DNA of 64,000 nucleotides from Macrostomum lignano (GCA_002269645.1 NIVC01003162.1:1-64000), one strand, 5' to 3'; shown: positions 1,618-59,973, counted from the stretch's first letter. Notes: generated by a model not told the origin, from the sequence alone. Program-made: numbers and translations.

Positions 1618-3240
1618 TCAGTTCCCCAGACAGGCCAACCCCCGTCTGCACCGCAGTCTCAATGAGTTGAGCATTCCGCACACCTGCTGTTTGAAAAACC
1701 TGTTCATACAGCCGTAGATGACCGGGTTCACTCCGTGGTTGATGAAGTAGAAATAGTACACTGTCTGCATGAACAGCCCGCCCAGGCCCACGTGGCTGCC
1801 CTCGTTGCTGCTGCTCCCTCCTTCTGACCCGCTGGAGCCGCTGCTGTACAGCCTCCGCCACCAGCTGCTGTTCTGCTGCTGGCTGTAGTTGCCTCCGGAT
1901 GCCGCCGCCGAGCTCCAGTTGCCGAAGCTTGCCGCGGCAGCTTGGTACGACTGCCAGTCGCTTAAGTTGATGCCTCCAGTCGTCGCGCCGCCCGACCTCC
2001 CGGCGCCGGCCTCTTGCAGGTGGAACACCAGAAAGAAGGGCAAATAAGAGAGCAGATAAAAGAAAGTGATGATGCTCAACACCTTGGCTGTTTTTATGTG
2101 CGGCCGCTTCCTAGTCCGCTCTGACAGGTGCTTCTGCGCCTGCGCCAGGCGGTTGCTCACCACCGAGTCTTCGCGACGCTGGCTGCCGACCAGCATTCGG
2201 CGCTGCTCGGGCGCCTCTTCGTCAGCTTCTTCTTCACGTCTCGGCTCGGCCTCCTGGCTGTTACCGTCATCATCGGCCACACTGATTTCCTTGTTGGCAA
2301 ACTTCACCGCACAGCTTGAGGCGGCGGCTTCTTGCCCGCCCAGTGCCTGGTCGATGTCCGTCTCTAGGATGCCGTTGTTCTGCCTGTCCGGCTGGCAGTC
2401 TTTGATTCTGTTGATGCCGTCGGCATTGGTATTGTTGGCTATTGAGCTGCGGCCAGCCTTGCCCTTGCCCTTGTCCTTGGCGTTGGAGACGCGGCTGACG
2501 TAGCTTCGCGATTTGTCCCAGCGACGCTGCCGCTTGCGCACGAAGTAGAAAATATTGGCGTAAAAAAACATAATAGCCAGCAGCATGCACAGGAACAGCA
2601 GTGTTAAGCAGGCCTTGTACACCCTGACGGTGATCATTGGCAGGATGCTGTAGTCGGCGATGCAGTGAGCCATGGTGACCGGCCGGCTGAGGACTCGGCC
2701 GGGCAGTTTCACAATCACTGTCCGCCTGGTGCCAGTCGTCAATCCAAGCGGGGTGCCCACGGCGAAGCCCAGCAGCAGGGTGAGGCCGATGAGTCGCACG
2801 GCCTGTCGCCGGCCGGTCTGAATGCCGGGCACGAAGCAGATGATGGCGAAGCGGTCCACCGCGATCAGGCAGAGCAGGAAGGCGGATGACGTCACCAGAG
2901 AGCAGCGGAGAATGTGAAAGATTTTGCACATGAAGTCGGTGGTGGCGGCCCGCCAGACGTCCTGATAGATGGTTGACGGAATGACAACAGAACAGACGGT
3001 CAGGTCCAGCGTGGCCAGCGCGATCACGTACACATTCTGGGGCAGCTCGCGAAGTCCCCTATGAAAGAAGAAGACAACAAGGATGTTGCCAAACAGGCCG
3101 ATCAGGGCCAGAGCGCCCAGTGACAGCGTGATGGCTACCGACATGGCCAGGGGCAGCTCGCCGCCCTGCTGAGTGGCCTGCATCATCTGGCTTAGTTGGG
3201 AGTCCCGGATACTGCTGTTGCTGCTCATAGTGAACTTCAT
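1618..3240 (-). CDS. Intronless rhodopsin-like (class A) GPCR, ligand unknown; likely start ATG 3240 (or 3228)
   Basis: 7 hydrophobic segments, GN in TM1, LATLD in TM2, DRF at the end of TM3, SYLP in TM6, NPVIYG in TM7, N-terminal NSS sequon. The ORF extension 3241-3426 runs through a splice acceptor (AG 3283-3282) and a dispersed repeat, so it is excluded. Confidence 0.9.
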   Translation of the reverse strand: MKFTMSSNSSIRDSQLSQMMQATQQGGELPLAMSVAITLSLGALALIGLFGNILVVFFFHRGLRELPQNVYVIALATLDLTVCSVVIPSTIYQDVWRAATTDFMCKIFHILRCSLVTSSAFLLCLIAVDRFAIICFVPGIQTGRRQAVRLIGLTLLLGFAVGTPLGLTTGTRRTVIVKLPGRVLSRPVTMAHCIADYSILPMITVRVYKACLTLLFLCMLLAIMFFYANIFYFVRKRQRRWDKSRSYVSRVSNAKDKGKGKAGRSSIANNTNADGINRIKDCQPDRQNNGILETDIDQALGGQEAAASSCAVKFANKEISVADDDGNSQEAEPRREEEADEEAPEQRRMLVGSQRREDSVVSNRLAQAQKHLSERTRKRPHIKTAKVLSIITFFYLLSYLPFFLVFHLQEAGAGRSGGATTGGINLSDWQSYQAAAASFGNWSSAAASGGNYSQQQNSSWWRRLYSSGSSGSEGGSSSNEGSHVGLGGLFMQTVYYFYFINHGVNPVIYGCMNRFFKQQVCGMLNSLRLRCRRGLACLGN

Positions 3241-3350
3241 TTCTGCTGTGTTGCTTCTGCTGCTGTTTGTTGGCTTTTCTTCTGTGGAAGGTTTTGGCAA
3301 AAGAGAAATCTGTATGTAGAGATTGTAGATATGTATATGGAGTAGAGATT

Positions 3351-3570
3351 CTGCCCATTCCTCTGACTCGAGCACATGCAAGCGCGCCAACACAGTACAC
3401 AGGCACGCAATCGTACACACGCTCACACAGGGTGTACAGCGGTCCTGACTGTCTAATCGTCAGGCATGTGCCTTGAAGGCTAACCCTCATGGCTGTGAAT
3501 CACACGACAACCCCCCCCCCACCTGTCAATTTTTGAGCTCACGAGCCCCAAAACGGAATCAAACTTGGGG
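3351..3570. mobile_element. Dispersed repeat copy 1 (family with TGTACA-CCTGAC-N9-GTCAGG palindromic core)
   Basis: Shares CACAGGGTGTACAGCGGTCCTGACTGTCTAATCGTCAGGCATGT and flanks with copies at 4596, 6200, 17466, 23070, 43742. Confidence 0.75.
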
Positions 3571-4595
3571 TCACGCGCGAGTCAGACTTGTTTAACGTTG
3601 AGCTGCTCTGGCCCCATGGGGTGATAGAGACTGCATGGTTGTTTAAACTGAGTGCAGCATGGACTTTAAGTCTTCAGTCGGTAAAGCTGACATTGCTATT
3701 CTACACAAGTGCATTCTATCAAAGCATTTCTGCGCTCCTCTCCTATCCACAAAGCGTCAGTCGGCGGCCCCTCTAACACCGAGGGAGCAATTTCACTCTG
3801 CCAGTTCATATGTTGAGAGGACTTTGAGGAGGTTCTTTCAGCTGTTCGCGTTGACTTAACGGAAGCAAAACAGTTGCTTCAAGCTGCGTACGTGCTCCCT
3901 GCAACAATGATTTCTGCGAGGTTTAGCAGCGTACGCAGGCGGGAAACAGATCCGTGGGAAGTGTTTCAGCCGCGGGCGCGTGAATGTCAGGCTTATCCGG
4001 GTGTATCTTGTTGCACGGTTAGCCTATAAGTTTGGCCTGGCTGCGGAGTTGAGCGGGAAGCTGAGAACAAATTTCCCGCTTGCAAGAAATGTAAAACGGT
4101 TGCTAAGGCCCGCGTTTCTCGCAATCCCAGGGCTTGTCCCAATTTTCTGACTGGTTAAAGAATTATTTATTGTCAGTTCTCAACTTACATTTTGCTTTGC
4201 CAGGCAGATGCAAATGCACACTGAAATCCTTGCGCCTTCTACTGTCGGATGGGTTGCTTCTGGCTGGAAAGCGCCGGGGTGGTTATTTTATCCTAAAAAA
4301 ATCCTGCGGGCTCGCAGTGGGAAGAAAAGGGAGGAGAAGGGAAGTGGAAATCGACCTCTCCAGTCCGGCTATTGGCCAGGACAAAATTCTGCACTGGCCT
4401 GTTTGGACTGCGGAGGCGGAGTTGACTGAGAAGTGTATTCTCTCCCTCTCTCTCGTAATATTTGTGCAGCGGTTAGACTTGTTGATCAATGTAGCGACGC
4501 TAATGCGGAGATGATAGAGATAGCCATCGCAGAGATAAATATAGTTATAAAAATTATGGCATGCGGCCAGCTGACCCGCAGCCAGTGAGTCGAGC

Positions 4596-4691
4596 ACGCG
4601 TGCTCATACAGGGTGTACATGGGCCCTGACTTCCTCATCATTAGTAGGAATGTACACACCCCGTGCCTTAGGCTAGAGCTGCACAAGCCCC
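4596..4691. mobile_element. Dispersed repeat copy 2 (diverged, internally deleted)
   Basis: CAGGGTGTACA..CCTGAC..TGTACA..GTGCCTTA..GCACAAGCCCC align to copies 1 and 4. Confidence 0.55.
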
Positions 4692-5743
4692 GAGGCAATT
4701 GAACGAGACAGTTCGAATCGTTCGAAACAGAGTTTGAAAGATACTGTACCCTTTTATACCAGTGTACTTTGTACAGCATACTAGATTTTCTACAAAAAAG
4801 GCACTGTGGTGCGCGTGAGCTCACAAATTGCTTTCTTCTACTCAATTGTTTGCCTCAGATAAGTATTGAACTGCCGCTTCCCATCTCTCTCTTCCCTCTC
4901 CCTACCTCTCTCTACCTCAGCACATTAGTTTTACCTGTTGGTTGATTCTGTCTACGCGTTCAAACCTTGCATTTTTTCCATTCCTTTGTTGTGCCAGCGC
5001 AGTGCAGGGTTGCACGGCCTAAAAGCATAGATGATTTTTCAAAACTGCCTCCGCATCGTTAACATTTTACAGCCAGTTAAATTGCCTGCTGACTTGTTGC
5101 TTATGCTTGAAATTATTTTGTCCCCCATTCATCTTGCCTGCATCAGCCGTTTTGCGTATACCAGTGTAGAGGATTTTTGTCCCCCTGGCAGAGAGCTGCG
5201 GCTGTGTGGGCTTTATTCTTTTCAACAATATATCTACATGTCGTGACCCGGGTCGGTTTGGGTGCCCAGTCCCGAGTACAATATATTTTACGTAATCTAA
5301 CAGGCGTAGTGACGCTCTGTCTGTACTTTTATGAATACGAGCAGGCGTGACGACGCTCTGCGATAATAGTTCGATTCCTCTGGTGTTGTGACACTCAGAG
5401 TTCACGCTGCGGCTCGAGGTGTGGTGACACTCTCGGGTGCTTCTAGTTTCGATACTGTAGGTTGTACACGCTATATAAAGTAACCGGTACAGTACTACAA
5501 TAATACGCAATATACAACGCTGCTGTGCCGCAGTGGTCACAGTCGCAGGCGTGATGACGCTCTAGCTATGGAATCACTGCTACGGCAAGGCCTCGGAAAA
5601 GCTAAAGAAGCGAATGAACTCGGGGGTCTTACCGGTGCCAGAAACTGTGGAGCTCGTTCGAGTATCGCTACCACTTGACCGCTTTATTTGTAGCTTTGGG
5701 TACCACAGATCGATAAACAGAGATGCCAAAATCCGAATTTGGA

Positions 5744-5790
5744 CATGCAATAAATTGAGTCCCCGCAGTAAGAGACCGTATAGACACGGC
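5744..5790 (-). ncRNA. Spliced-leader-exon-like sequence GCCGTGTCTATACGGTCTCTTACTGCGGGGACTCAATTTATTGCATG, not followed by GT
   Basis: The 3' 36 nt differ at about 2 positions from the Macrostomum SL as I recall it (..ACGGTCTCTTACTGCGAAGACTCAATTTATTGCATG; from memory, needs checking). Ends in AUG like flatworm SLs, and the 5' CCGT/ACGG hairpin is retained. Confidence 0.6.
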
Positions 5791-5950
5791 TCGCTTGAAT
5801 ATCGCTAGGTTAGATTGAAGAGCTAGGCACGGGCGCGGAGCGGAGAGCGGGGAGCTGGCTGGGCCAGGCTTGAGCACTCCACTTAACAGGGTAGAGGGGC
5901 AGACAACGCGAGAGAGAGAGAGAGATGCCAAACAAAAGAGACGACCCTTC

Positions 5951-6034
5951 AGCCAATCAGCGTGCCCGCCGAGCAGATCTGATTGACTGGGGGCCAGAAA
6001 AGAAAACCACAAAAACACAAGCCCAGCCAATCAG
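5951..6034. promoter_or_regulatory. CCAAT-box cluster (AGCCAATCAG x2 plus an inverted variant) 160-245 nt upstream of the SL-like sequence
   Basis: AGCCAATCAGCG at 5951 and 6025; CTGATTGACTG at 5979; matches the NF-Y consensus. Confidence 0.4.
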
Positions 6035-6199
6035 CGACCGCCGCGGGGAAAGACTCAAGCCGGGCTGAGCGCCCCCCCCCCCAACCAGCCAGAACTGGTC
6101 TGGGGATGGCCGCCTAGGGCGCACATAAAAAAACAACTCAAAAAGTGCAAGAGCACTCAACAGGCCAGACACTACATACGCGTGGAGCAGACCAGCTCA

Positions 6200-6374
6200 G
6201 CGGTGAACACAGCCATGAGGGCCAGCCCCCAAGGCACAGATAGTGTACATGCTTGAGGATTAGAAAGTCAGGACCGCAGTACACCCTGTGCGAGCGTGTG
6301 TATGAATGCAGTGCCTGCGTACTGTATTGGTGCGCTTGTGTGCGCTCAGGTCAGGAGTCAGTGGAATGGGCACA
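6200..6374. mobile_element. Dispersed repeat copy 3 (opposite orientation to copy 1)
   Basis: CACAGCCATGAGG..AAGGCACAGATAGTGTACATGCTTGAGGATTAGAAAGTCAGGACCGCAGTACACCCTGTG..GGAATGGGCAC. Confidence 0.75.
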
Positions 6375-6886
6375 ATTGGTTCGCCCGTATCTCTTTTTTT
6401 GGCAACCATTGTCCGTCTTCTGTCCCATTCTGTGTTTCGCCTCTTGTCTTCCGTCTTCTACCCCTCTATATTGCTTGCTGCCTCTCTTTGCACCTTTCCC
6501 TCCCTTCTCCTCTGTTGTCAGTGGATAAACTTGGCCTTGATTTGAGCCCCCTTGTAGTGAAATTCGAATGCCTTATAGAAACTCCTGACTGGCTGCAGTT
6601 TGACATTGATTTTGCGTCAAAACCAGAACGCGGACACAAGGAATACGAACTGATTGAACTGTCGTAAAACTGGACAAAAAAGTTAAAAAGGAAGTTTGCC
6701 ACACGGACAGGCCGACAGGGCAGGGTTAAAGTAACGACCTGCTTGCTTAGGGGCATGGAACCAATTCATTCATCACCAATATTAAAGCTGGAAGTGCAGC
6801 TCTGAAGGTCATTGGAAAACTGCAAAGCTGTGGGAGAGTGGCTTAAACTCTCTAGGCCATGACTGGTCAGCATCCTGTAGTTGGCC

Positions 6887-7072: not shown

Positions 7073-7524
7073 CTGTGTAGCACCAAGCAATAGTACTCTG
7101 CAAAAGTGCACGTTATTTGTTGTAAGTTACTTGTCTATGCCAGATCTACCGAACGTTCGACCGCACCCATAGGCGACACTGTACCCCTTTAGTTATCACA
7201 GAGTCCTCTGGACTAATTTGCAATAGATTTATCCCTTGCTTGAGTATAATTGCCATTCCTAGCAAAGAAAGTGTTTAACCCGGCGAGTCCGTCTATGTTC
7301 TTTGTTCTAAACCTTTTCATTTTGCTGCTTCAAGTGTCTTTGACTTTGAAAAAAACTTATAGGCTTTGCTAAAATTGAAAGTCTCTTAAACTTAACGATG
7401 TCTAAAAAGGGATACAAGTGGTTTAATTGGCATTTTATTAGTTCTTTTGCACGACCTTTGCACTGCTGACTGATATTTTCTGTCAGCCGCAAACTTTCAC
7501 CTGCGTCACATCAAGCATCTCTTT

Positions 7525-8250
7525 TGTCACACCAAGCGTCACCCCAGAGAGTCACACCAAGCGTCACCCCAGAGTCACACCAAGCGTCACCCCAGAGAGT
7601 CACACCAAGCGTCACCCTCCAGCGAGTCACACCAAGCGTCACCCCAGAGAGTCACACCAAGCGTCACCCTCCAGCGAGTCACACCAAGCGTCACCTCAAA
7701 GAGTCACACCAAGCGTCACCCCAGAGAGTCACATCAACCGTAACCCCACAGAGAGTCACACCAAGCGTCACCCCAGAGAGTCACACCAGGCGTCACATCA
7801 GAGTCACACCAAGCGTCACCCCAGAGAGTCACATCAACCGTAACCCCACAGAGAGTCACACCAAGCGTCACCCCAGAGAGTCACACCAGGCGTCACATCA
7901 AAGAGTCACACCAAGCGTCACCCCAGAGAGTCACATCAACCGTCACCCCAGAGAGTCACATCAACCGTCACCCCAGAGAGTCACATCAACCGTCACCCCA
8001 GAGAGTCACATCAACCGTCACCCCAGAAAGTCACATCAAGCGTCACCCCAGAAAGTCACACCAAGAGTCACCCCAGAGAGTCACATCAACCGTCACCCCA
8101 GAGAGTCACATCAACCGTCACCCCAGAGAGTCACATCAACCGTCACCCCAGAGAGTCACATCAACCGTCACCCCAGAGAGTCACATCAACCGTCACCCCA
8201 GAGAGTCACATCAACCGTCACCCCAGAGAGTCACACCAAGCGTCACTCAG
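7525..8250. repeat. Intronic minisatellite, ~25-bp unit (GTCACACCAAGCGTCACCCCAGAGA), ending just before the LYST acceptor
   Basis: Direct reading; forms the spurious N-terminal half of ORF 7524..9269. Confidence 0.95.
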
Positions 8251-8285
8251 CGTCACTCAAATCAAGTTTCTCTTTGCGCCCGCAG

Positions 8286-11200
8286 GCTGACAGCTCCGGC
8301 GACGCGCCGCAGTCAGCCAGCTGGTCATTCGACGAAGTCAAGGAGGTGCACCTTCGCCGCTACGAGCTCCGCGACAACGCCCTCGAGATTTTTCTGGCCA
8401 ACGGTGCCGCCTACCTGCTGGCGTTTCAGTCGCCTCGCGATCGCGACGAAGTGGCCCGCGTGGTGGACGGCCTGGAGTTGGACAGCCGCGTCCGCCAGCT
8501 CACAGTTGACGAGGCCCAGCGCCAGTGGGTCACCGGCCAGATGAGCAACTTCGAGTACTTGGCCTTCCTCAACACGGCCTCTGGCAGGTCCTACAACGAC
8601 CTCATGCAGTACCCCGTGTTCCCCTGGGTCCTGGCCGACTACGACTCCGTCGAGCTGGACCTGACCCAGCCGGCCACCTTCCGCGACCTCGCTAGGCCGA
8701 TCGGCACCCAGGACGACTCGGCCGTGGCCCGGCACCGGGACAAATACGAAGTGCTGGACAGGCAGTACAGGGAGCTCGGACCGGACCACGCCACGCCGCC
8801 CTATCACTATTCGAGTCACTATTCGAACTCGGGCACCGTGCTGCACTACTTGGTCCGCCTGCCGCCCTACACCCAGCTGTTCACCGTGTACCAGGACCGG
8901 CACTTCGACCTGCCCGATCGGACTTTTCACTCCATCCGAACCAGCTGGCGCTTGAGCTCGAAGCTGTCGGACTCGGACGTCAAGGAGCTCATTCCGGAGT
9001 TCTTCTGCCTGCCGGAGTTTTTTATCAACAGCGAGGAGCTCGACTTCGGCGTCAAGCAGTCCGGAGTTCGAGTTGACAATGTCGAACTGCCGCCCTGGGC
9101 CGCCGATGATCCGCGCCGGTTCGTCCTCATTCACCGGGCCGCCCTGGAGTCGCCGCTCGTCACTGAGAAACTGCACAAGTGGATTGACCTCATCTTCGGG
9201 TACAAGCAGACAGGTAATGTTCGGCTTGCTTGCTATGGGATTGAGGATCTGGGGGGATTATGGACTTAGGTGGAGATTGGGGATCTGGGTGGAGATTGGG
9301 GATCTGGGTGGAGATTGGGGATCTGGGTAGAGATTGGGGATCTGGGTGGAGATTGGGGATCTGGGTTGAGATTGGGGATCTGGGTTTAGATTGGGATCTG
9401 GGTTGAGATTAGGGACTTGGGTTGAGATTGGGGATCTGGGTTGAGATTGGGGATCTGGGTTGAGATTGGGGATCTGGGTTGAGATTGGGGTTCTGGGTTG
9501 AGATTGGGGATCTGGGTTTAGATTGAGGATCTGGGTTGAGATTAGGGATCTGGGTTTAGATTGAGGATCTGGGTTGAGATTGGGGATCTGGGTTTAGATT
9601 GGGGATCTGGGTTTAGATTGGGGATCTGGGTTGAGATTGGGGATCTGGGTTGAGATTGGGGATCTGGGTTTAGATTGGGGATCTGGGTTGAGATTGAGGA
9701 TCTGGAGAAGAGATTGAGGATCTGGATATGATATTGAGGATCTGGGGATGACATTGAGGATCTGGAGAAGAGATTGAGGATCTGGAGAAGAGATTGAGGA
9801 TCTGGGGATGAGATTGAGGATCTGGGGATGAGATTGAGGATCTGGGGGTGAGATTAGGGATATGGGGATGAGATTAGGGATCTGAGGATGAGAATAGGGA
9901 TCTGGGTTGAGATCGAGGATCTGAAGGTGAGATTGAGGATCTGGGTGAGATTGAGGATCTGTGGGTTAGATTGAGGATCTTGGGGTGAGATTGAGGATCT
10001 TGGGGTGAGATTGAGGATCTGGGGGTGAGACTGAGGATCTAGGGGCGAGATTAGGCATCTGGGGGGAGATTGAGGATCTGGGGGTGAGATTATCCGATAG
10101 CTAAATCTGCCTAAAAACTTTGTCGTCTCCTCTTAAACGCGCAGGCAAGGCGGCGCTCAGCTCGGTGAACCTGTTCCACCCGTACACCTACTTCGGCGCC
10201 ATCGACCTGGACCAGATCGACGACCCGGTGCGGCGCCGCGCCATCGAGACGATGATCAAGACGTACGGCCAGACGCCTAAGCAGCTGTTCCGATCGCCGC
10301 ACCAGCCGCCTGTGGCAGCGGCGCCTCGCTCTGGCCGGGTGCCCGGGGCTTTCGGCGTTCGATTTGGAAATTATTGCGGCTCGCCAGACTGCCAGGCCCC
10401 GCCCCAGGTGCGCTGCCGGGATGGGGCCAGCTGGGGCCGGCCTGTGTGGTGCTTCTGCCACTACAGGATCCGTGATATTATACTGGATCACCTTCCCAGA
10501 TCCTCAGTTGCTGGGCCAGCTATCAACCTCCCAGATCCTCAGTTTCTGGGCCAGCCTCCCAGATCCTCAGTTTCTGGGCCAATCTCCCAGATCCCTAGTT
10601 CCCTAGTTTCCGGGCCAGCCTCCCAGATCCCCAGTTTCTGGGCCAGCTTCCCAGATCCTCAGTTTCTGGGCCAGCCTCCCAGATCCTCAGTTTCTAGGCC
10701 AGCCTCCCGGATCCTCAGTTTCTGGGCCAGCCTCCCGGATCCTCAGTTTCTAGGCCAGCCTCCCGGATCCTCAGTTTCTGGGCCAGCCTCCCGGATCCTC
10801 AGTTTCTGGGCCAGCTTCCCAGATCCTCAGTTGCTGGGCCAGCCTCCCAGATCCTCAGTTTCTGGGCCAGCTTCCCAGATCCTCAGTTGCTGGGCCAGCC
10901 TCCCAGATCCTCAGTTGCTTGGCCAGCCGTCAACCTACCAGATCCTCAGTTTCTGGGCCAGCCTCCCAGATCCTCAGTTTCTGGGCCAGCCTCCCGGATT
11001 CTCAGTTTCTGGGCCAGCTTCTCAGATCCTCAGTTTCTGGGCCAGCCTCCCAGATCCTCAGTTTCTGGGCCAGCCTCCCAGATCCTCAGTTTCTGGGCCA
11101 GCCTCCCAGATCCTCAGTTTCTTGGCCACTGCCAGCCTCTCAGATGCTTAATCCCCTCTCTTCCGCTGGACCACAGGTTGCCTGGTGCGAGCAGCTGGCG

Positions 11201-14924: not shown

Positions 14925-23436
<8,512 letters not shown>

Positions 23437-32753: not shown

Positions 32754-45351
<12,598 letters not shown>

Positions 45352-49240: not shown

Positions 49241-49414
49241 ACTGCAGCTGGGATAACCTTGAATTGACTGATAGGTGGGTGCAGGCTGATTGCTTTGCAC
49301 TTTGTTGCTTTGAGAAGGTCTGCTAATCTGTTGCCTAAATGTCATGTGATGTGATGTATATTCGCCTTACCAATGAGTTAGCGGAAAATTATGGTTAAGG
49401 TTTAAAGTTATATT

Positions 49415-49802
49415 CCAGCCAATCAGAGACGAGATCAGTCTAGCTTAGAGCAAGCATCCAGCCAATCAGAAACGAGATCAGTCTAGCTTAGAGCAAGCAT
49501 CCAACCAATCAGAGACGAGATCAGTGTAGCTTAGCTAGCTTCCAGCCAATCTGAGACGAGATCAGTCTAGCCTAGCTAGTTTCCAGCCAATCAGAGACGA
49601 GATCAATCTAGCTTAGCTAGTTTCCAGCCAATCAGAGACGAGATCAGTCTAGCTTAGCTAGTTTCCAGCCAATCAGAGACGAGATCAGTCTAGCCTAGCT
49701 AGTTTCCAGCCAATCAGAGACGAGATCAGTCTAGCCTAGCTAGTTTCCAGCCAATCAGAGACGAGATCTGCCGTCTAGATTAGTTTTTCCAGCTAATCAG
49801 AA
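49415..49802. repeat. ~41-bp tandem repeat, each unit carrying CAGCCAATCAG
   Basis: About 10 units of CCAGCCAATCAGAGACGAGATCAGTCTAGCTTAGCTAGTTT. Confidence 0.92.
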
Positions 49803-50389
49803 CTTCCGTTTAAACTCCAATTAAAATTCCAATCATGTTTATTTTCAATAGCAGATTTTAAGAAAGTAGTTGACATTTCGTGTGTAGTTTATTTTTACTT
49901 GATCCATTTTTGTTATATACTATTCTGTAAAATACTTTCGATCTCAGAGTGTTGCGTTATTTATATTTATATTTAAGAGTAGTAAAATTTTCATCTTGTT
50001 TTAGTAATCGCTGTTTTAATTTTATACCATAGTTCCATGCTATAAAATGGAATAATAATTCCATACTATACCCTGCAGCCTTTGCTTAAACCATTATACC
50101 GAGTAATTTTTAATACTATGCTTTTACCACTGTGATATGTAAATCTATTTATCATGGGAATACAAGTTATTAGTACACTAACAGGCTAATCCGTTCTGTT
50201 TGCTGTGCAGTTTTCTGGTTACCAGCCGCACTATATATCAAATTAATACGCACATTAAACTGACAGCTGATTTATTCTCTATCTCCGTCACTTTCTCTTG
50301 TTTTTGAAAGGAGGGTACGAGCAGCATTGTGGAGGTTTAGTGTGGAGGATGAGGATGAGATTAGGTCAGAAGAAAGTAGTGGAAGTGTA

Positions 50390-52945
50390 AAGAGGGGCAG
50401 GGTGGATACAGGGGCGATAGAGGGGCAGGGTGGATAGAGGGGCAGGGAAGATAGAGGGGCAGGGTGGATAGAGGGGCAGGGAGATAGAGGGGCAGGGAGG
50501 ATAGAGGGGCAGGGAAGATAGAGGGGCAGGGAAGATAGAGGGGCAGGGAGGATACAGGGGCGATAGAGGGGCAGGGAGGATAGAGGGGCAGGGTGGATAG
50601 AGGGGCAGGAAGATAGAGGGGCAGGGTGGATAGAGGGGCAGGAAGATAGAGGGGCAGGGTGGATAGAGGGGCAGGAAGATAGAGGGGCAGGGAGGATAGA
50701 GGGGCAGGGAAGATAGAGGGGCAGGGTGGATAGAGGGGCAGGGAGATAGAGGGGCAGGGAGGATAGAGGGGCAGGGAAGATAGAGGGGCAGGGAAGATAG
50801 AGGGGCAGGGAGGATACAGGGGCGATAGAAGGGCAGGGAGGATAGAGGGGCAGGGTGGATAGAGGGGCAGGAAGATAGAGGGGCAGGGTGGATAGAGGGG
50901 CAGGAAGATAGAGGGGCAGGGAGGATAGAGGGGCAGGGAAGATAGAGGGGCAGGGTGGATAGAGGGGCAGGGAGATAGAGGGGCAGGGAGGATAGAGGGG
51001 CAGGGAAGATAGAGGGGCAGGGTGGATAGAGGGGCAGGAAGATAGAGGGGCAGGGAAGATAGAGGGGCAGGAAGATAGAGGGGCAGGAAGGATAGAGGGG
51101 CAGGGAAGATAGAGGGGCAGGGTGGATAGAGGGGCAGGGAGATAGAGGGGCAGGGAAGATAGAGAGGCAGGGAAGATAGAGGGGCAGGGAGGATACAGGG
51201 GCGATAGAGGGGCAGGGAGGATAGAGGGGCAGGGTGGATAGAGGGGCAGGAAGATAGAGGGGCAGGAAGATAGAGGGGCAGGGTGGATAGAGGGGCAGGA
51301 AGATAGAGGGGCAGGGTGGATAGAGGGGCAGGAAGATAGAGGGGCAGGGAGGATAGAGGGGCAGGGAAGATAGAGGGGCAGGGTGGATAGAGGGGCAGGG
51401 AGATAGAGGGGCAGGGAGGATAGAGGGGCAGGGAAGATAGAGGGGCAGGGAGGATACAGGGGCGATAGAGGGACAGGGAGGATAGAGGGCAGGGTGGATA
51501 GAGGGGCAGGAAGATAGAGGGGCAGGGAGGATACAGGGGCGATAGAGGGACAGGGAGGATAGAGGGGCAGGGTGGATAGAGGGGCAGGGAAGATAGAGGG
51601 GCAGGGAAGATAGAGGGGCAGGGAGGATACAGGGGCGATAGAGGGGCAGGGAGGATAGAGGGGCAGGGTGGATAGAGGGGCAGGGTGGATAGAGGGGCAG
51701 GAAGATAGAGGGGCAGGGTGGATAGAGGGGCAGGAAGATAGAGGGGCAGGGAGGATAGAGGGGCAGGGAAGATAGAGGGCAGGGTGGATAGAGGGGCAGG
51801 GAGATAGAGGGGCAGGGAGGATAGAGGGGCAGGGAAGATAGAGGGGCAGGGTGGATAGAGGGGCAGGAAGATAGAGGGGCAGGGTGGATAGAGGGGCAGG
51901 AAGATAGAGGGGCAGGGAGGATATAGGGGCAGGGAAGATAGAGGGGCAGGGTGGATAGAGGGGCAGGGAGATAGAGGGGCAGGGAAGATAGAGAGGCAGG
52001 GAAGATAGAGGGGCAGGGAGGATACAGGGGCGATAGAGGGGCAGGGAGGATAGAGGGGCAGGGTGGATAGAGGGGCAGGAAGATAGAGGGGCAGGGTGGA
52101 TAGAGGGGCAGGAAGATAGAGGGGCAGGGTGGATAGAGGGGCAGGAAGATAGAGGGGCAGGGAGGATAGAGGGGCAGGGAAGATAGAGGGGCAGGGTGGA
52201 TAGAGGGGCAGGGAGATAGAGGGGCAGGGAGGATAGAGGGGCAGGGAAGATAGAGGGGCAGGGAGGATACAGGGGCGATAGAGGGACAGGGAGGATAGAG
52301 GGGCAGGGTGGATAGAGGGGCAGGAAGATAGAGGGGCAGGGAGGATACAGGGGCGATAGAGGGACAGGGAGGATAGAGGGGCAGGGTGGATAGAGGGGCA
52401 GGAAGATAGAGGGGCAGGGAGGATAGAGGGGCAGGAAGATAGAGGGGCAGGGTGGATAGAGGGGCAGGGAAGATAGAGGGGCAGGGAGGATACAGGGGCG
52501 ATAGAGGGGCAGGGAGGATAGAGGGCAGGGAAGATAGAGGGGCAGGGAGGATACAGGGGCGATAGAGGGCCAGGGAGGATAGAGGGGCAGGGTGGATAGA
52601 GGGGCAGGAAGATAGAGGGGCAGGGAGGATAGAGGGGCAGGGAAGATAGAGGGGCAGGGAGGATACAGGGGCGATAGAGGGGCAGGGAGGATAGAGGGGC
52701 AGGGAGGATACAGGGGCGATAGAGGGGCAGGGAGGATAGAGGGGCAGGGAAGATAGAGGGGCAGGGAGGATACAGGGGCGATAGAGGGCCAGGGAGGATA
52801 GAGGGGCAGGGTGGATAGAGGGGCAGGAAGATAGAGGGGCAGGGAGGATAGAGGGGCAGGGAAGATAGAGGGGCAGGGAGGATACAGGGGCGATAGAGGG
52901 GCAGGGAGGATACAGGGGCGATAGAGGGGCAGGGAAGATAGGGGG
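50390..52945. repeat. 2.5-kb purine-rich minisatellite (GATAGAGGGGCAGGG(A/T)G variants)
   Basis: Direct reading; source of the spurious 926-aa Pro-rich ORF. Confidence 0.97.
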
Positions 52946-53514
52946 GTAGGGAGGTTAGAGGGGTAGGGATGATAGAGGAAGTATAGAGGGAATGGGACTA
53001 TTACAGAGGCTGGGAGAGTGGCAGGGGTATAAACAGGAGCATGACAAGTCAATCTGCTCTACAAGTGCATCAAGGGAGAGCGGTTATTCGCAGCTCAGCA
53101 TCGCAGAGTGCCTCCCGGGAGTTGGCATGGAACTGGCCGGATAAATTCAAATGTTTTTGCTGAGCCTGCGCTTAAAAAGCGGAATTTTTCGAGCCGTCGT
53201 TTTTTCACTTCGCAGCGGAGAGTCGGGCAGCCATTTCCCAATTAGCATGGGAGCGGCAGGGCAGGGCTGGGAACATCAAAATGAAGCCGTTTTAGTCCGG
53301 CTGGCGATTTCGGGGACTGCGCTGTCCGTGTGCCGAGCTGATTGTGAATTCTGCTGCTGCGATTCGGGATTAGTCTAGACAGATGAAGTGCTGGGAGGCT
53401 GGCTGCACTGGCTCGGGTGCATTGCCGGTTCAGTGGACTCGCGTCTGAGGTGATTGGGGATGGCTCGAGAGGTGATCGGGATGGCTCGAGAGCTGCAAAT
53501 TTAGAGGTCGGAGT

Positions 53515-54285: not shown

Positions 54286-57197
54286 TCAAGTTGCCGTACT
54301 GGCAACTCTCTAAGTGGTTTAGGGACATTCCGCAGTTTGGTTTAAGGGTGATTAAATATTAAGGCAAGGTTAGGGGTTTTGGCAAGTATATAAAAGCGAT
54401 CTTATAGAAAAAATTAAAAATCAGAAAATAGTATTCCAAATTCAGAATGACTTCAACTGTGCTGTGTCACGTCCTTCAATCCTGTTATGTAATTATTAAA
54501 ATATAAGCAGGTGCTGCCATGGGTTATCTTTAGCTTAAGATTTGGGCCAAAAATGAACCAGAAACAGCATATATTAGTTGGGGAGAAGTGGGAGTGGTTG
54601 TTAGAGATGAGAGCTGATGTGACTCATTTCAGCCGAAATCAAAAGGAAACAATGGCTTGGGAAACCGGCCACTTGTTCAAGCAGTTGGTGGGGTGGGGGG
54701 GGGTTGCCGCTGCAATCTGCAATTTTGCTTTGGCAAACGGATCGCTGCAGTCTGACAAATTTGCTTGCAGGGGGGGAGCTGATTGGTGTTTAATTTTAGC
54801 CATTGGCAAGCCCGATTTGGGCGTTGGCGCCGGCGGTCGCTGCATTTTGAATTGATGCCAGCTTTGCACTTTAGGCGCTGATACAATGGGCTGACGGCAC
54901 CACTGCCGGCCTGCGACAGTTGGACATTGGCTGCCTTCGGATTCCATTGTACATTGTCTTTTACATTGTACTCTTAAGTTCTATACCAAGCCCGATGGCG
55001 CTAAACAAGTAGTATGAAGATGCACACGTCTTTTTGCCACCAGTGAACGGGCTTCTTTTTAGACGTGGGTCTTCATACTACTTGACAAACCTAGTTTTGT
55101 ACCGATGAAAAAAAACTTTGAGAAGCTCAAGAAAATGAAAATCGGTTTCTCTCCTCTCTAATCTCTCTCTCTAGTCTCCCCTCTCCTCTCGCTTCTCTCT
55201 TATCTCCTCTTTTCTCTTCTTCCTCTATTCTCTTTCGTTTCCTCTCTCATCTGGCCAGCAGCCATGAACTGGAATCTTCTAGAATAGGCCCTCGATCTAA
55301 AAAATTGTCTAAGTCTCCAGAGCGTTGAAGGGTTATACCACCCCATTAAGCTGGTTGTTTCGGCGCAAGATCTTCTTAGCATCAGCTTAAGTGCTTGGAA
55401 AGTCAGGCCAGTTTTGTGGGACATATTATAATACTCGTACTCTCAATTAGATTGTACACTAAACTGGCATAGATACCCTAAGCCTCTTCCTCTTCTCCAA
55501 CGGGGTTGCAAAGAAAGCTATAAATAAAGTCATTTCAAAACACTGTACATTGCTACTGTATAAGCCGTATCTCACCTTTTGGTCTGGGGAAGGGATTGTA
55601 AACGTAGTGACTTGGAACTTGCCACCCGCTAAACTTTGTCAATTTAAATGTGCAGTTAAAGAGCTAAATTTTAATACAAAATTCTAATCACGTGACGCCT
55701 GTTTATCGATCTAATTTTCCTTGGTCTGTGCGCGAAGCAAATAAAGCTTTATTGACGCCCCTCCGGCCCAAGCCCTCACGTCGTCACTCGTCAGTCCCCC
55801 CCCCGCTTAGAAGGACGGAAGTGTACATTGTATGTACGATTATTCCTTCCCTTCCTTTCCTTTCTAACCAGCTTAACTCGGCCCCACGCCAAAGCCATGC
55901 AAGCAATCGCATGCAAATGCAAATTATGCAATGCGGTATTTCATATGCAGCATAATCTGATGAATTTTGGTGCAAAAAAGGCATTTTTTACCTCAAAAGA
56001 ACAACGAATGGTTATGAAACTCAAGAAATTTGCTAAATTAACTGTATAGAACACTGTGTATTGGTTTCAGTGCAAAATTCCTACCATTACCCGGTTAATT
56101 ACGAGCGTAGCCCCGGAAGTAGCAAAAGTGTCACAAATCAAGTTTTCAGTTTTTTATCGATAATTTTTTACCCAATGAACCGAATCTCTAGAAATTGCAC
56201 ACAAATAGGCCTCGTTATGTGGGAAATCAGGCGTCATAAAAATATTGCCGTCCTATTGCGTTTTTTGCCTGATTTCAAGCCAAATATTAAAAAATCACTA
56301 CTCTGATCGATTTCCAATCACTTTTGACACAAGAGCACTTGTTGCAGACACTCAAAAACTTGGTCAATTAAAGCCCGACATTAGTACAACTAATTGCAGT
56401 GTCCGCATTTGATCTACCATTCTTTTAAAATATTAATCATCCATTTTTCGGGCACCGAATCAGCCAAAATTCACAAATTATCGATTTCTGATCGATTTTT
56501 CAACCCGAAAGCATCGAAATCAGACGGCGGCAATTTATAGTACAGCAACTTTGCTATAGAAATTTGAAATCGGCTTTATTCGCACCATGTTCTCAAAATT
56601 ATAATGAGCAATAATGCGAAACTCATGTGATTTTTTGAAAAATCGATTCTTGTAGATTTTCTCAGCACTGCAGAATCGTAGGAAAACAAAACTTTAGACA
56701 CTTGTAGATATTTGCATTGCGCATCTAACTGCACTGCTTTGAAGCCGAAACTCAAAAAGCTTCGTAGGAAAAAGTGGGGAGATAATAAAATGAGGGTATT
56801 TTTTTACCCAAAAAAACCCACCAAAACTGAATAAAGATGTCGAAATAAATTAAAGCGCCATATACCATTTTGTAGTAAATTTAGTTTTACAACTTTGATC
56901 CTCAGATGTCGAAGCCGTATCTCGTTAAGGTGTACCAGAATTTTGAGATCTCCCAGAAGCACTTTTGAAAAAATCGTCTTTCCACTTAATTTACGGCTTA
57001 GTAATAAAATCTCTGCACTTAAAAGTATATTCATTCGATAGATCTAAAAGTTTTCTATCGATCGACACCTCACTCAACTCAATCGGTGCAGTGGTTGCAA
57101 AAAAGGAGCATTTTTTGGCGAAAAAACGTGAAATTTAAAAATGCATGGGAGTCTAACTTATTTACCGGCGGCGCCGGACTCGGCTCGTTCACTGGTG

Positions 57198-57808
57198 GAA
57201 CTAGAGCTGGTATAGACATCACAACTAGAGCTGGTATAGGCATCACAACTAGAGCTGGTATAGGCATCACAACTAGAGCTGGTATAGGCATCACAACTAG
57301 AGCTGGTATAGGCATCACAACTAGAGCTGGTATAGGCATCACAACTAGAGCTGGTATAGGCATCACAACTAGAGCTGGTATAGGCATCACAACTAGAGCT
57401 GGTATAGGCATCACAACTAGAGCTGGTATAGGCATCACAACTAGAGCTGGTATAGGCATCACAACTAGAGCTGGTATAGGCATCACAACTAGAGCTGGTA
57501 TAGACATCACAACTAGAGCTGGTATAGGCATCACAACTAGAGCTGGTATATATAGACATCACAACTAGAGCTGGTATAGGCATCACAACTAGAGCTGGTA
57601 TAGGCATCACAACTAGAGCTGGTATATATAGACATCACAACTAGAGCTGGTATAGGCATCACAACTAGAGCTGGTATATATAGACATCACAACTAGAGCT
57701 GGTATAGGCATCACAACTAGAGCTGGTATATATAGACATCACAACTAGAGCTGGTATAGGCATCACAACTAGAGCTGGTATAGACATCACAACTAGAGCT
57801 GGTATAGA
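57198..57808. repeat. 24-bp minisatellite (CTAGAGCTGGTATAGGCATCACAA)
   Basis: Direct reading. Confidence 0.96.
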
Positions 57809-59973
57809 CGCCAAACAGCCGGGGCCTCTGATATCGAATGTCAGACTGGCCCAGTTGAGTATAAATTAGCCATTGCCCGATGAAAATCGCAGGCAGGCTG
57901 TTGTGCGCAGCTTCCTGTTATTTCTGCTCGATGCTTTCAGGTGCAAATAATTGTAAGCCATAAAAGCGGAGGATTTACGCTGCTTTTAGCTGATGGGGAC
58001 GGACCGGCATCCTTCATCATGCTTGCTTGGGATCGAGTGGAGTTGTGGGTGCCCGGGTTTGCAGATCAAACGAGTGGCAGCCCACATCTCCTTAATTGAG
58101 TTATCAACACGGCTGCCCCTGTGCTCAGATATCGCCGATTTGCAATAAATATCCCATATCCCCATTTTTTGCTTCTCCTCCCATGGGGTCCCGGCCGGTT
58201 TCAGACCCCCCCAGTAAAAGGCTTGTAGGGGAATGATGACGAGAGGCGTCAAATAAAGATGCTAACAAAATCGGCAGATCAGCAGACAGCTCAGAGCTAA
58301 TTATTCGTTCCGGTCAAGCGCGGGTTGTTAAAGTGCGCCCAAATGCAGCAGAGGCTGAATCAATATTTCAAGTTTGCACTAATTTATTTTTGGCCCGCTT
58401 GCGTGTTTGCCATCGCCTGCCTGCTACAGTCAGCATTGCTATTATTACCATGATGACTCAAGCCCGATTGCTGCGGAGTCCGGGCTTGAGCACGTGTGTG
58501 GGCGGCTGCTCTCGGTTGCTGGGAGACCGACAGTAGAGAAAGGAAACTAGCAACGTCGCTGACAATACCATCCGGTTGCTACGAGAGTTTCAAACTCCTA
58601 TGAAGAGACGAAGAGCCACTGTGTCTCGTAAAGTGGCGATCGATACCGGATCCGGAATGGTAAAGATTCTATTTTAATCATAGATTCATAGACCAGGAAG
58701 TTCAACCATAGACAATCAATCCTGGCGCTGGAGAGGAGATTGCAACTGAAAGCTACGAGTATAATAGTTGCCACTATAAAAAAACAAAAAAATGAATTTC
58801 TTTCACCTTAGACCTAAAGGTGATTTTGCCATAGAAAAAATCAATTCTGTTCGCTTGATCGTGAAAGACTGATCAATTGACGTATTCTCACCGATTGGGG
58901 CTACGTAAATTAAAATTGCTACTCAACTCCAACCTGAGCACCGCACTTACAAGGGGGGCTTCAGGACGCACCCACACAAGGCTTCACCAGAGTCTGGACG
59001 CAGTGGTACAGCCTGGGGCTGGCACACATTGGCCGGTACGCCTCGGTAAGCTCTGGCGGGTCTTAATTCGATTGCTCTAGATTGAGTTAAGTAAGAGACC
59101 GTCTTTCCGGCTAGCAAGGAGAGAAAATCAAGACGTGAACACGACACCACACCCCAACACACGGCGTCAGTAATTAAATATCTACGGCCCGCGGAGGGGG
59201 GAGGCCAACAGCCCTCCAACCCACCACCCCATCGATCCCAACCCGCGCCAGCCAACCACACCGCCAGGGGGGGAGGAAACACCGATCCCCCCGCCGCTCG
59301 GCCCAGCCAATCAGAACGCAGTAAGCAACAAATAGTACAGAAGCTGAACGATAAGTCATAGTAAAAAAACGCCCGGCTTGAACCAATTGATGCATGTGGG
59401 GACAAACTGAGTCAACCTGGCACTGAAACAAAAGTGCATGCAGAAAACAACAGTAATAAAAGTATTGAGTGCAAGTTTCACTAATAGATCGATAAAATTG
59501 ACTCTTAGTCACTCAGAAGTTAGCAATGGAAAATCTTTTTTAAAATGAACATTACTACGCCTTTACACTTTCATTAAGCCTGGAGACGAAAAAAGCTTTA
59601 ATGTTTCAAGCAATTTAGCCAGCCCATCTTGGTCTGGGGGATAGATTGGCATTGTACGTATTGAGGCAATGCTGCCAGTGTTTGTACTACAGCCGGGTAG
59701 GGACCGAGAGAGTTTCCAATTGGTGAAAAGGTGCCTTCGCAACCAACGCCCTTGAAGCTAATTTTTTGTTTGCTACGTCAATCAGGGCCAAAGCCAGTGG
59801 GAGCCGGGGCGGGCGGCCTCCTCACTCCGCCGCCCTCTCGTCCCCCCCCCCCCCCGGCGGGTCAGATTGCGTGTATTTAAGCTGCGGCACGGGCCGCCCC
59901 AGCTGCCCTTACGCCACCAGCTCAGCCGGCACCAGCTCAGGCGCAACACTCGACAGCTACTCTCGAACCCGAC

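Follow-up and report, generated by a model that had tools for sequence, protein, structure and literature searches.

The 64,000-nucleotide (nt) stretch of the Macrostomum lignano genome analysed here (GCA_002269645.1 NIVC01003162.1:1-64000; hereafter, the window) carries on its minus strand a gene for a rhodopsin-family G-protein-coupled receptor (GPCR) and, about 2.4 kb upstream of it, a sequence resembling the spliced leader (SL) of this genus. We refer to the region of this SL-like sequence as locus 1, and coordinates of the locus are on the minus strand unless stated otherwise. An earlier reading of the DNA (the original prediction) held that the SL-like sequence may be the first exon of the GPCR gene, co-opted from an SL RNA gene or a fragment of one and joined to the receptor by cis-splicing, or donated in trans as an extended leader. 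The positions on which that proposal was built (SL-like start at 5790, donor at 5633, acceptor at 3281, a 20-codon upstream open reading frame (uORF) and the receptor ATG 41 nt past the acceptor) were all verified. Judged from its sequence, however, locus 1 descends from an SL RNA gene without being a working one. The features on which the argument turns are as follows.

5790-5744, minus strand: SL exon relic, the 47-mer GCCGTGTCTATACGGTCTCTTACTGCGGGGACTCAATTTATTGCATG, which ends in ATG followed by TCC, without a GT donor
5746-5684, minus strand: open reading frame (ORF) of 20 codons from the SL AUG, predicted translation MSKFGFWHLCLSICGTQSYK followed by a stop
5733-5726, minus strand: Sm-like motif GAUUUUGG, the textbook Sm-site consensus, 11-18 nt past the AUG
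5807-5671, minus strand: unit A of a tandem pair, made up of the SL exon relic, preceded by 17 nt of flank and followed by 73 nt without a donor
5670 to ~5560, minus strand: unit B of the pair, consisting of the repeated 17-nt flank, a deleted SL exon, a canonical donor and a decayed intron half (3′ limit approximate)
5633-5626, minus strand: donor GGTAAGAC, the same eight bases as the final exon base and donor in the canonical SL RNA gene, in the context CACCG/GTAAGAC, exon end 5633
5632-3282, minus strand: putative intron of 2351 nt, non-coding and repeat-rich
3289-3282, minus strand: acceptor-like TTCCACAG, putative exon start 3281, which would suit cis-splicing or ordinary SL trans-splicing
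3240-1618, minus strand: rhodopsin-family GPCR gene, single exon, 540 amino acids (aa), stop codon included; ATG at 3240, 41 nt past 3281

The standard for comparison is the canonical Macrostomum SL RNA gene. The published leader of M. lignano is CGGTCTCTTACTGCGAAGACTCAATTTATTGCATG (PMC8629364), and its 109-nt gene continues from the leader straight into GTAAG and includes an Sm-like site and three hairpins (PMC8629364, Ustyantsev & Berezikov 2021). M. cliftonense has the same full 45-nt leader (GCCGTAAAGACGG…ATG), and for M. hystrix the assembled part, 43 nt, does not differ from it (PMC10468722 supplement); M. lignano is reported to have a single leader (PMC8629364, PMC12582326). The canonical leader stretch reads …CTGCGAAGACTC…ATG and the exon-donor junction ATG/GTAAGAC. 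A pattern scan of public contigs returned two complete canonical genes, L005 615-723 and L007 1589-1697. The first lies in a metagenome contig (Ga0302322_100095745) next to a Na/K-ATPase beta gene, 1.05 kb upstream of its ORF and on the same strand. The second lies in JAGQZA010000190.1, a contig filed under a Flavobacteriaceae metagenome-assembled genome, which is probably flatworm contamination because it carries a complete Macrostomum-type SL RNA gene. The leaders of the two are identical, their flanks differ and their intron halves are ~86% identical, with the differences in hairpin loops; together they show an SL RNA intron half that is conserved, with changes confined to those loops. The L005 RNA folds with z = -3.0 and pairs its leader with its own donor. 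Five metatranscriptome contigs (L001-L004 and L006; Ga0316592) start with the leader, all in the canonical GCGAAGAC version, and are trans-spliced flatworm mRNAs. A scan of the viral_contigs collection for the leader found no match, and in Rfam no family matched the window, locus 1 or the canonical gene, there being no Rfam model for this RNA.

Against this standard, the relic at 5790-5744 is a clear homologue of the leader. It matches the SL profile with an nhmmer E value of 2e-8 over profile positions 8-46. It is also the sole near-full-length leader match within the window, and in a shuffling comparison 0 of 100 shuffles reached the SL match. It shares with the canonical gene the leader start GCCGT, a 36-nt core with two substitutions and the terminal AUG; ~38 of 45 canonical positions are retained and ~7 changed. 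GTCTATA stands in place of AAAGA and GG in place of AA, the GG-variant stretch being CTGCGGGGACTC and its canonical counterpart the version quoted above for the mRNAs. The tag that would mark the variant leader as coming from this locus is CTGCGGGGACTCAATTTATTGCATG, followed in the genomic sequence by TCCAAATTC.

Beyond the leader, most of what makes an SL RNA gene is missing. The 5′ leader exon ending in AUG is present, although its ~7 of 45 altered positions depart from a genus-invariant sequence, but TCC stands where a GU donor should directly follow the leader, and the stem I, hairpins 2 and 3 and Sm-like arrangement of the canonical gene are lost. The Sm-like motif at 5733-5726 is an isolated one, and its placement relative to hairpins is unlike that in the canonical gene. 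A covariance model (R1) assigned 140.6 and 140.7 bits to the two canonical genes from which it was itself built, 22-23 bits to leader-only mRNA 5′ ends and 17.9 bits to locus 1, for which its alignment marks the stem-I pairs as broken. Compared with shuffled sequences, neither a 105-nt version of locus 1 (z = -0.8) nor an extended 221-nt version (z = +0.5) folds significantly. A by-eye alignment that matched the sequence after the AUG to canonical hairpin 2, the Sm site and the 3′ end, by way of a 15-nt deletion of the donor, reached only p = 0.10-0.16 and is not claimed. The proposal of an SL RNA gene or fragment therefore stands for the fragment, which has promoter-like boxes of its own (described below), and fails for a canonical gene, given the 17.9 bits and the missing donor.

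The same measurements bear on the idea that locus 1 is a working variant SL RNA that donates a leader of ~158 nt in trans from the 5633 donor, which we regard as extremely unlikely. In its favour, this donor is identical to the canonical SL donor and could, by eye, pair with the leader's GGUCUCUUAC in the manner of canonical stem I, and the post-donor sequence UCUUUAGC resembles canonical UUUUUAGC. The extended version nevertheless shows no stable SL RNA-like fold, and the sequence past the 5633 donor gave z values of -0.2 and +0.2, with no hairpins found there flanking an Sm-like site. Hairpins 2 and 3 are gone, the covariance score is 17.9 bits as against 140, and published accounts of the species describe one leader (PMC8629364, PMC12582326). 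This part of the original prediction thus finds no structural support.

The organization of locus 1 explains how a leader and a donor came to lie so far apart. The 20-mer at 5807-5788, which comprises the 17 nt of upstream flank and the first three leader bases, is identical at 16 of 20 positions to 5670-5651, and because none of 400 shuffles equalled this repeat we read the locus as a tandem pair with a period of 137 nt (unit A against unit B, alignment p = 0.011). The unit B leader, GCTCCACAGTTTCTGGCACCG, is internally deleted by ~24 nt. An alignment of unit B with the canonical SL RNA spans the exon-intron junction (p = 0.0125), and 5647-5619 within it gives a weak colinear nhmmer match to profile positions 32-59. 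The full leader and the canonical donor of locus 1 consequently sit in separate units, the donor 111 nt downstream of the ATG, and the 158-nt exon of the original prediction combines unit A with 38 nt from the start of unit B, its sequence running up to the donor as ...TTTCTGGCACCG.

From this arrangement, the 5633 donor is probably the native donor of the truncated second SL RNA gene unit. Its 8-mer occurs once in 128 kb (both strands of the window), as follows from descent from an SL RNA gene. Taken simply as a GTRAG site it is one of five on the minus strand between 5900 and 3200 (the others are at 4824, 4188, 3542 and 3426) and on its own is not above chance expectation. The donor is thus present and consensus, as had been claimed, but its strength would be inherited from unit B and so says nothing about selection for cis-splicing.

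A second SL relic lies ~53 kb from locus 1, and both are preceded by CCAAT-type boxes.

59111-59069, minus strand: second SL relic, GCCGGAAAGACGGTCTCTTACT..ACTCAATCTAGAGCAATCG, nhmmer E = 3.6e-4, found through model searches and short-word BLAST
59066-59055, minus strand: mutated donor of the second relic, TTAAGACCCGCC, with TTAAGAC three nt past the exon relic
6034-6021, minus strand: distal box of locus 1, CTGATTGGCTGGGC, ATTGG on the minus strand, 244 nt upstream of the SL-like start
5979-5989, plus strand: middle box of locus 1, CTGATTGACT, inverted relative to the other two and with a single mismatch; the minus strand reads TCAAT
5960-5947, minus strand: proximal box of locus 1, CTGATTGGCTGAAG, 74 nt from the distal box
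59314-59301, minus strand: proximal box of the second relic, the identical 14-mer CTGATTGGCTGGGC, 203 nt upstream of the relic
59391-59377, minus strand: second ATTGG of the second relic, 76 nt further upstream

The second relic consists of GCCGGAAAGACGGTCTCTTACT, ACTCAAT and a degenerate leader end, with the mutated donor three bases later. A Pfam search of nearby ORFs and inspection of the strand showed no recognisable gene downstream of it for several kilobases. The exact sequence CTGATTGGCT occurs at locus 1 at 6034-6025 and 5960-5951. Across the window it has three sites, all upstream of the two relics, and otherwise appears only in a minisatellite at 49413-49768 (41-bp unit, 8.6 copies, 93% matches), every unit of which contains a CCAAT-type site, CTGATTGGCTGG. 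The cluster of boxes at locus 1 is non-random. Among the canonical genes, L005 has CCAAT boxes at -169 and -156 and L007 has none; the upstream and downstream flanks of locus 1 showed no significant similarity to L005.

Because the same boxes recur upstream of a relic that has no recognisable gene downstream, we assign them, on their arrangement in the window, to a repeated unit of boxes plus SL gene and not to a promoter of the GPCR. Most simply, they would serve the SL RNA gene of this genome as its distal promoter element. CCAAT boxes had been placed at 6034-5951 on the minus strand; the positions are correct, but the minus strand reads ATTGG and the CCAAT pentamers lie on the plus strand.

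Taken together, the two relics show what is expected of SL RNA pseudogenes: significant homology (E = 2e-8 and 3.6e-4) combined with loss of essential elements, and signs of copying at the DNA level in the flank repeat, the junction alignment of unit B and the common boxes. SL RNA gene relics are of a kind already described in parasitic flatworms, in which donor-less SL RNA loci have been read as pseudogenes, that is, non-functional gene copies (PMC12582326). The loci of Schistosoma bovis, S. haematobium and Fasciola hepatica likewise have a recognisable leader with an unconserved donor (PMC12582326). They differ from locus 1 in that the latter is a tandem pair, with exon and donor surviving in separate units, and in that the relics of M. 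lignano share an upstream CCAAT-type module.

Copying could instead have passed through RNA, the 47-mer then being the product of reverse transcription of a trans-spliced RNA made up of the leader and a downstream exon. Significant homology does end exactly at the exon-end ATG, the covariance score is of the size seen for leader-only mRNA ends, and the window contains a long interspersed nuclear element (LINE) with reverse transcriptase, endonuclease and RNase H domains. There is also precedent, in retrogene leaders of dinoflagellates (PMC6050394, PMC5585692, PMC12014239) and in the transposon-linked partial leaders of parasitic flatworms (PMC12582326), which have in common with locus 1 a genomic copy of a trans-spliced leader upstream of a gene. 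Those copies, however, are RNA-derived and abut the copied transcript, whereas locus 1 keeps upstream flank and an exon-intron junction and its gene is 2.4 kb away. The tandem repeat takes in 17 nt ahead of the leader, flank that any RNA copy would lack; unit B retains the exon-intron junction and the second relic appears, by eye, to do so as well (TTAAGAC); and the upstream boxes are common to both. A search for the marks of retrotransposition found neither a poly(A) tract nor a convincing target-site duplication, the one 8-mer found being part of the tandem repeat, and Pfam recognised no coding potential downstream. The locus therefore does not look like a retrocopy of a trans-spliced RNA, and we consider such an origin very improbable.

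The receptor gene itself is sound. Its product matches Pfam 7tm_1 at 106 bits, where the cutoff is 30.5 (E = 2.9e-30), and has an NPVIY motif near the C terminus. Protein searches returned distant GPCR homologues only; exact look-up and homology searches found no counterpart of the product in protein and contig collections, and no paralogue lies within the window. Between donor and acceptor, the 2.35 kb described as non-coding proved to be so: a Pfam search of all ORFs in the 2351 nt at 5632-3282 gave no matches. The interval contains two copies of a dispersed repeat (4602-4668 and 3348-3497) and degenerate AGAGCGTCAYCACGCC repeats at ~5300-5560; repeats of this type at 5300-5560 (minus strand) resemble, inverted, the GTCACACCAAGCGTCACCCCAGAGA satellite at 7524-8228 (plus strand).

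The acceptor does little to tie the relic to the receptor. The 400 nt preceding the GPCR ATG contain seven comparable AG sites, this one included; on its own it is not above chance, and it departs at its second position from the published trans-splice motif YTNCAG; a competing acceptor, ACAG/, lies at 3310/3309. Some 30-39% of M. lignano genes are reported to be trans-spliced (PMC8629364, PMC5730564). If the GPCR gene is among them, an acceptor near its ATG is expected anyway and so carries little weight for a cis link. Proximity is weak evidence too, because there are two relics in 64 kb and the canonical gene of L005 lies 1.05 kb from an unrelated ORF.

In the cis-splicing scheme, the relic promoter would be active and a transcript starting at ~5790 would be spliced from 5633 to 3281, giving the receptor mRNA a 199-nt 5′ untranslated region (UTR) with a leader look-alike and the 20-codon uORF. 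We judge this unlikely. Donor and acceptor do stand in the correct order and on the correct strand; the donor is consensus, the acceptor plausible, the UTR short and A-rich and the CCAAT-type boxes intact. No competing ORF occupies the minus strand between 5633 and 3281, and the 2351-nt intron is within the published range for M. lignano (mean 1.1-1.4 kb; PMC5730564). As precedent, a genomic SL sequence has been found at the 5′ end of a protein-coding gene of the same species, Mlig013257.g1 (PMC8629364). Both cases, within one genus, would have a genome-encoded SL sequence at the head of a protein-coding transcription unit, but the 5′ sequence of Mlig013257.g1, first published as an SL RNA, was reported only as a mis-assignment (PMC8629364).

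Against the scheme, donor strength would be inherited from the SL RNA gene and the boxes would be those of the SL unit; no recognisable gene lies downstream of the second relic, and the acceptor is indistinguishable from chance and of a sort that any trans-spliced gene needs. In vertebrates, the promoters of small nuclear RNA (snRNA) genes couple poorly to mRNA-type processing, and by analogy a promoter of the snRNA type at locus 1 may also couple poorly. Sequence support for a link between relic and receptor is thus weaker than it first appeared.

The reading we favour, with moderate confidence, is that chance has placed a cluster of SL RNA pseudogenes upstream of the GPCR gene. A unit made up of an SL RNA gene and, ~170-245 nt upstream, two CCAAT-type boxes would have been copied at the DNA level, part of the copy then being tandemly duplicated with the 137-nt period before both copies decayed. 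Unit A would have kept its leader with 7 changed positions and lost the donor and the leader-donor stem, and unit B would have lost the middle of its leader and kept its own donor, GGTAAGAC, with a decayed intron half. Neither relic could then serve as a normal SL RNA. The GPCR gene would be independent: most likely its transcript receives the canonical leader in trans at ~3281 or 3309, or begins at a start site of its own. We infer that the relics of both loci are non-functional and unused by the receptor gene.

Several observations weigh against this reading. Eight upstream ATGs lie at 3358-3693, and some 5′ processing at ~3281 is therefore likely. The donor at 5632 is still consensus; where a transcript contains a donor further upstream, its outron becomes an intron, which is expected to favour cis- over trans-splicing (cited in PMC8629364) and with it the cis-splicing scheme. 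For unit A and the second relic, alignment of the intron half to the canonical intron falls short of significance (p = 0.10-0.16), and for this reason the gene-level, as opposed to RNA-level, origin of both rests on their common upstream sequence. The boxes are kept perfectly in both relics although the spacers are unalignable, which hints at continuing selection, and the promoters may be active. Finally, GTAAG donors lie at nearly the same distance from the two leader starts, 158 nt at locus 1 and 161 nt at the second relic (GTAAGT at 58950), a coincidence of roughly p = 0.004-0.03 that was noticed post hoc.

These last two points, the outron rule and the precedent of Mlig013257.g1 also keep the cis-splicing scheme alive, though as suggestive, post hoc indications. 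The perfectly kept boxes and the similar donor distances favour a further reading as well, that the relic promoters are active for something else, such as short or long non-coding RNAs or enhancers, with the donors, if used, joined to nearby cryptic acceptors. Elevated GC content at 5801-6200 agrees with such a role; the CpG and GC profiles are otherwise uninformative. Yet the box differs little from a generic CCAAT-factor site of high affinity and is also found in the 41-bp minisatellite, and its identity at the two loci may therefore reflect consensus and not selection; the match in donor distance is discounted as post hoc. We hold this role, too, to be unlikely. A broader form of co-option, in which relics with an active CCAAT promoter and a usable donor were exapted as promoter-plus-first-exon cassettes, would give the GPCR a leader-mimicking cis-spliced 5′ end with a uORF and would place the second relic in the same class; it seems to us improbable. 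The pseudogene cluster accordingly remains our preferred account of locus 1.

Other features of the window set the surroundings of the locus. Exons at 8229-9269 and 10120-c.10310 (plus strand) encode PH_BEACH and BEACH domains of a LYST-like gene; their best relatives are 50-63% identical, and a protein search with the BEACH exons found no close relative. The region of the GPCR gene and the SL relic is probably upstream of, or within an intron of, this opposite-strand gene. An ORF at 7524 (plus strand) is, over its first 235 codons, merely a translated tandem repeat. The dispersed repeat mentioned above, ~150 nt long with the core ...ACACGCTCACACAGGGTGTACAGCGGTCCTGACTGTCTAATCGTCAGGCATGT..., has six copies (3348-3497, 4602-4668, 6208-6376, 17470-17581, 23073-23167 and 43743-43860), two of which flank the SL relic and putative intron in inverted orientation; the copies resemble independent insertions of a short interspersed element. 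A single large transposon bounded by the inverted repeats at 3348-3497 and 6208-6376 was considered and rejected, the two arms being 77.5% alike and yet 89-96% alike to the copies at 43743 and 23088.

Further along the window, the LINE ORF (35048-38866, minus strand; 1272 aa) looks intact, with endonuclease, reverse transcriptase and RNase H domains. An ORF at 32754-33833 (plus strand) matches a mucolipin extracytosolic domain (E = 8.8e-15) and is probably an exon of a TRPML-type channel gene. The long ORFs at 1-670, 50272-53052 and 57079-57610 are translations of tandem repeats and not genes: a Pfam search of the ORF at 50272-53052 gave no match, and those at 1-670 and 57079-57610 were judged by their repetitive translation.

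For the genus, these results mean that leader-like sequences in Macrostomum genomes can be relics of SL RNA genes, and that reads are needed before such sequences are called SL genes, evidence of trans-splicing or first exons. The two-box module ~170-280 nt upstream of the relics is a candidate for the Macrostomum SL RNA promoter. If the relic promoter were after all active and its transcript spliced to the GPCR, locus 1 would represent an unusual route to a new 5′ exon.

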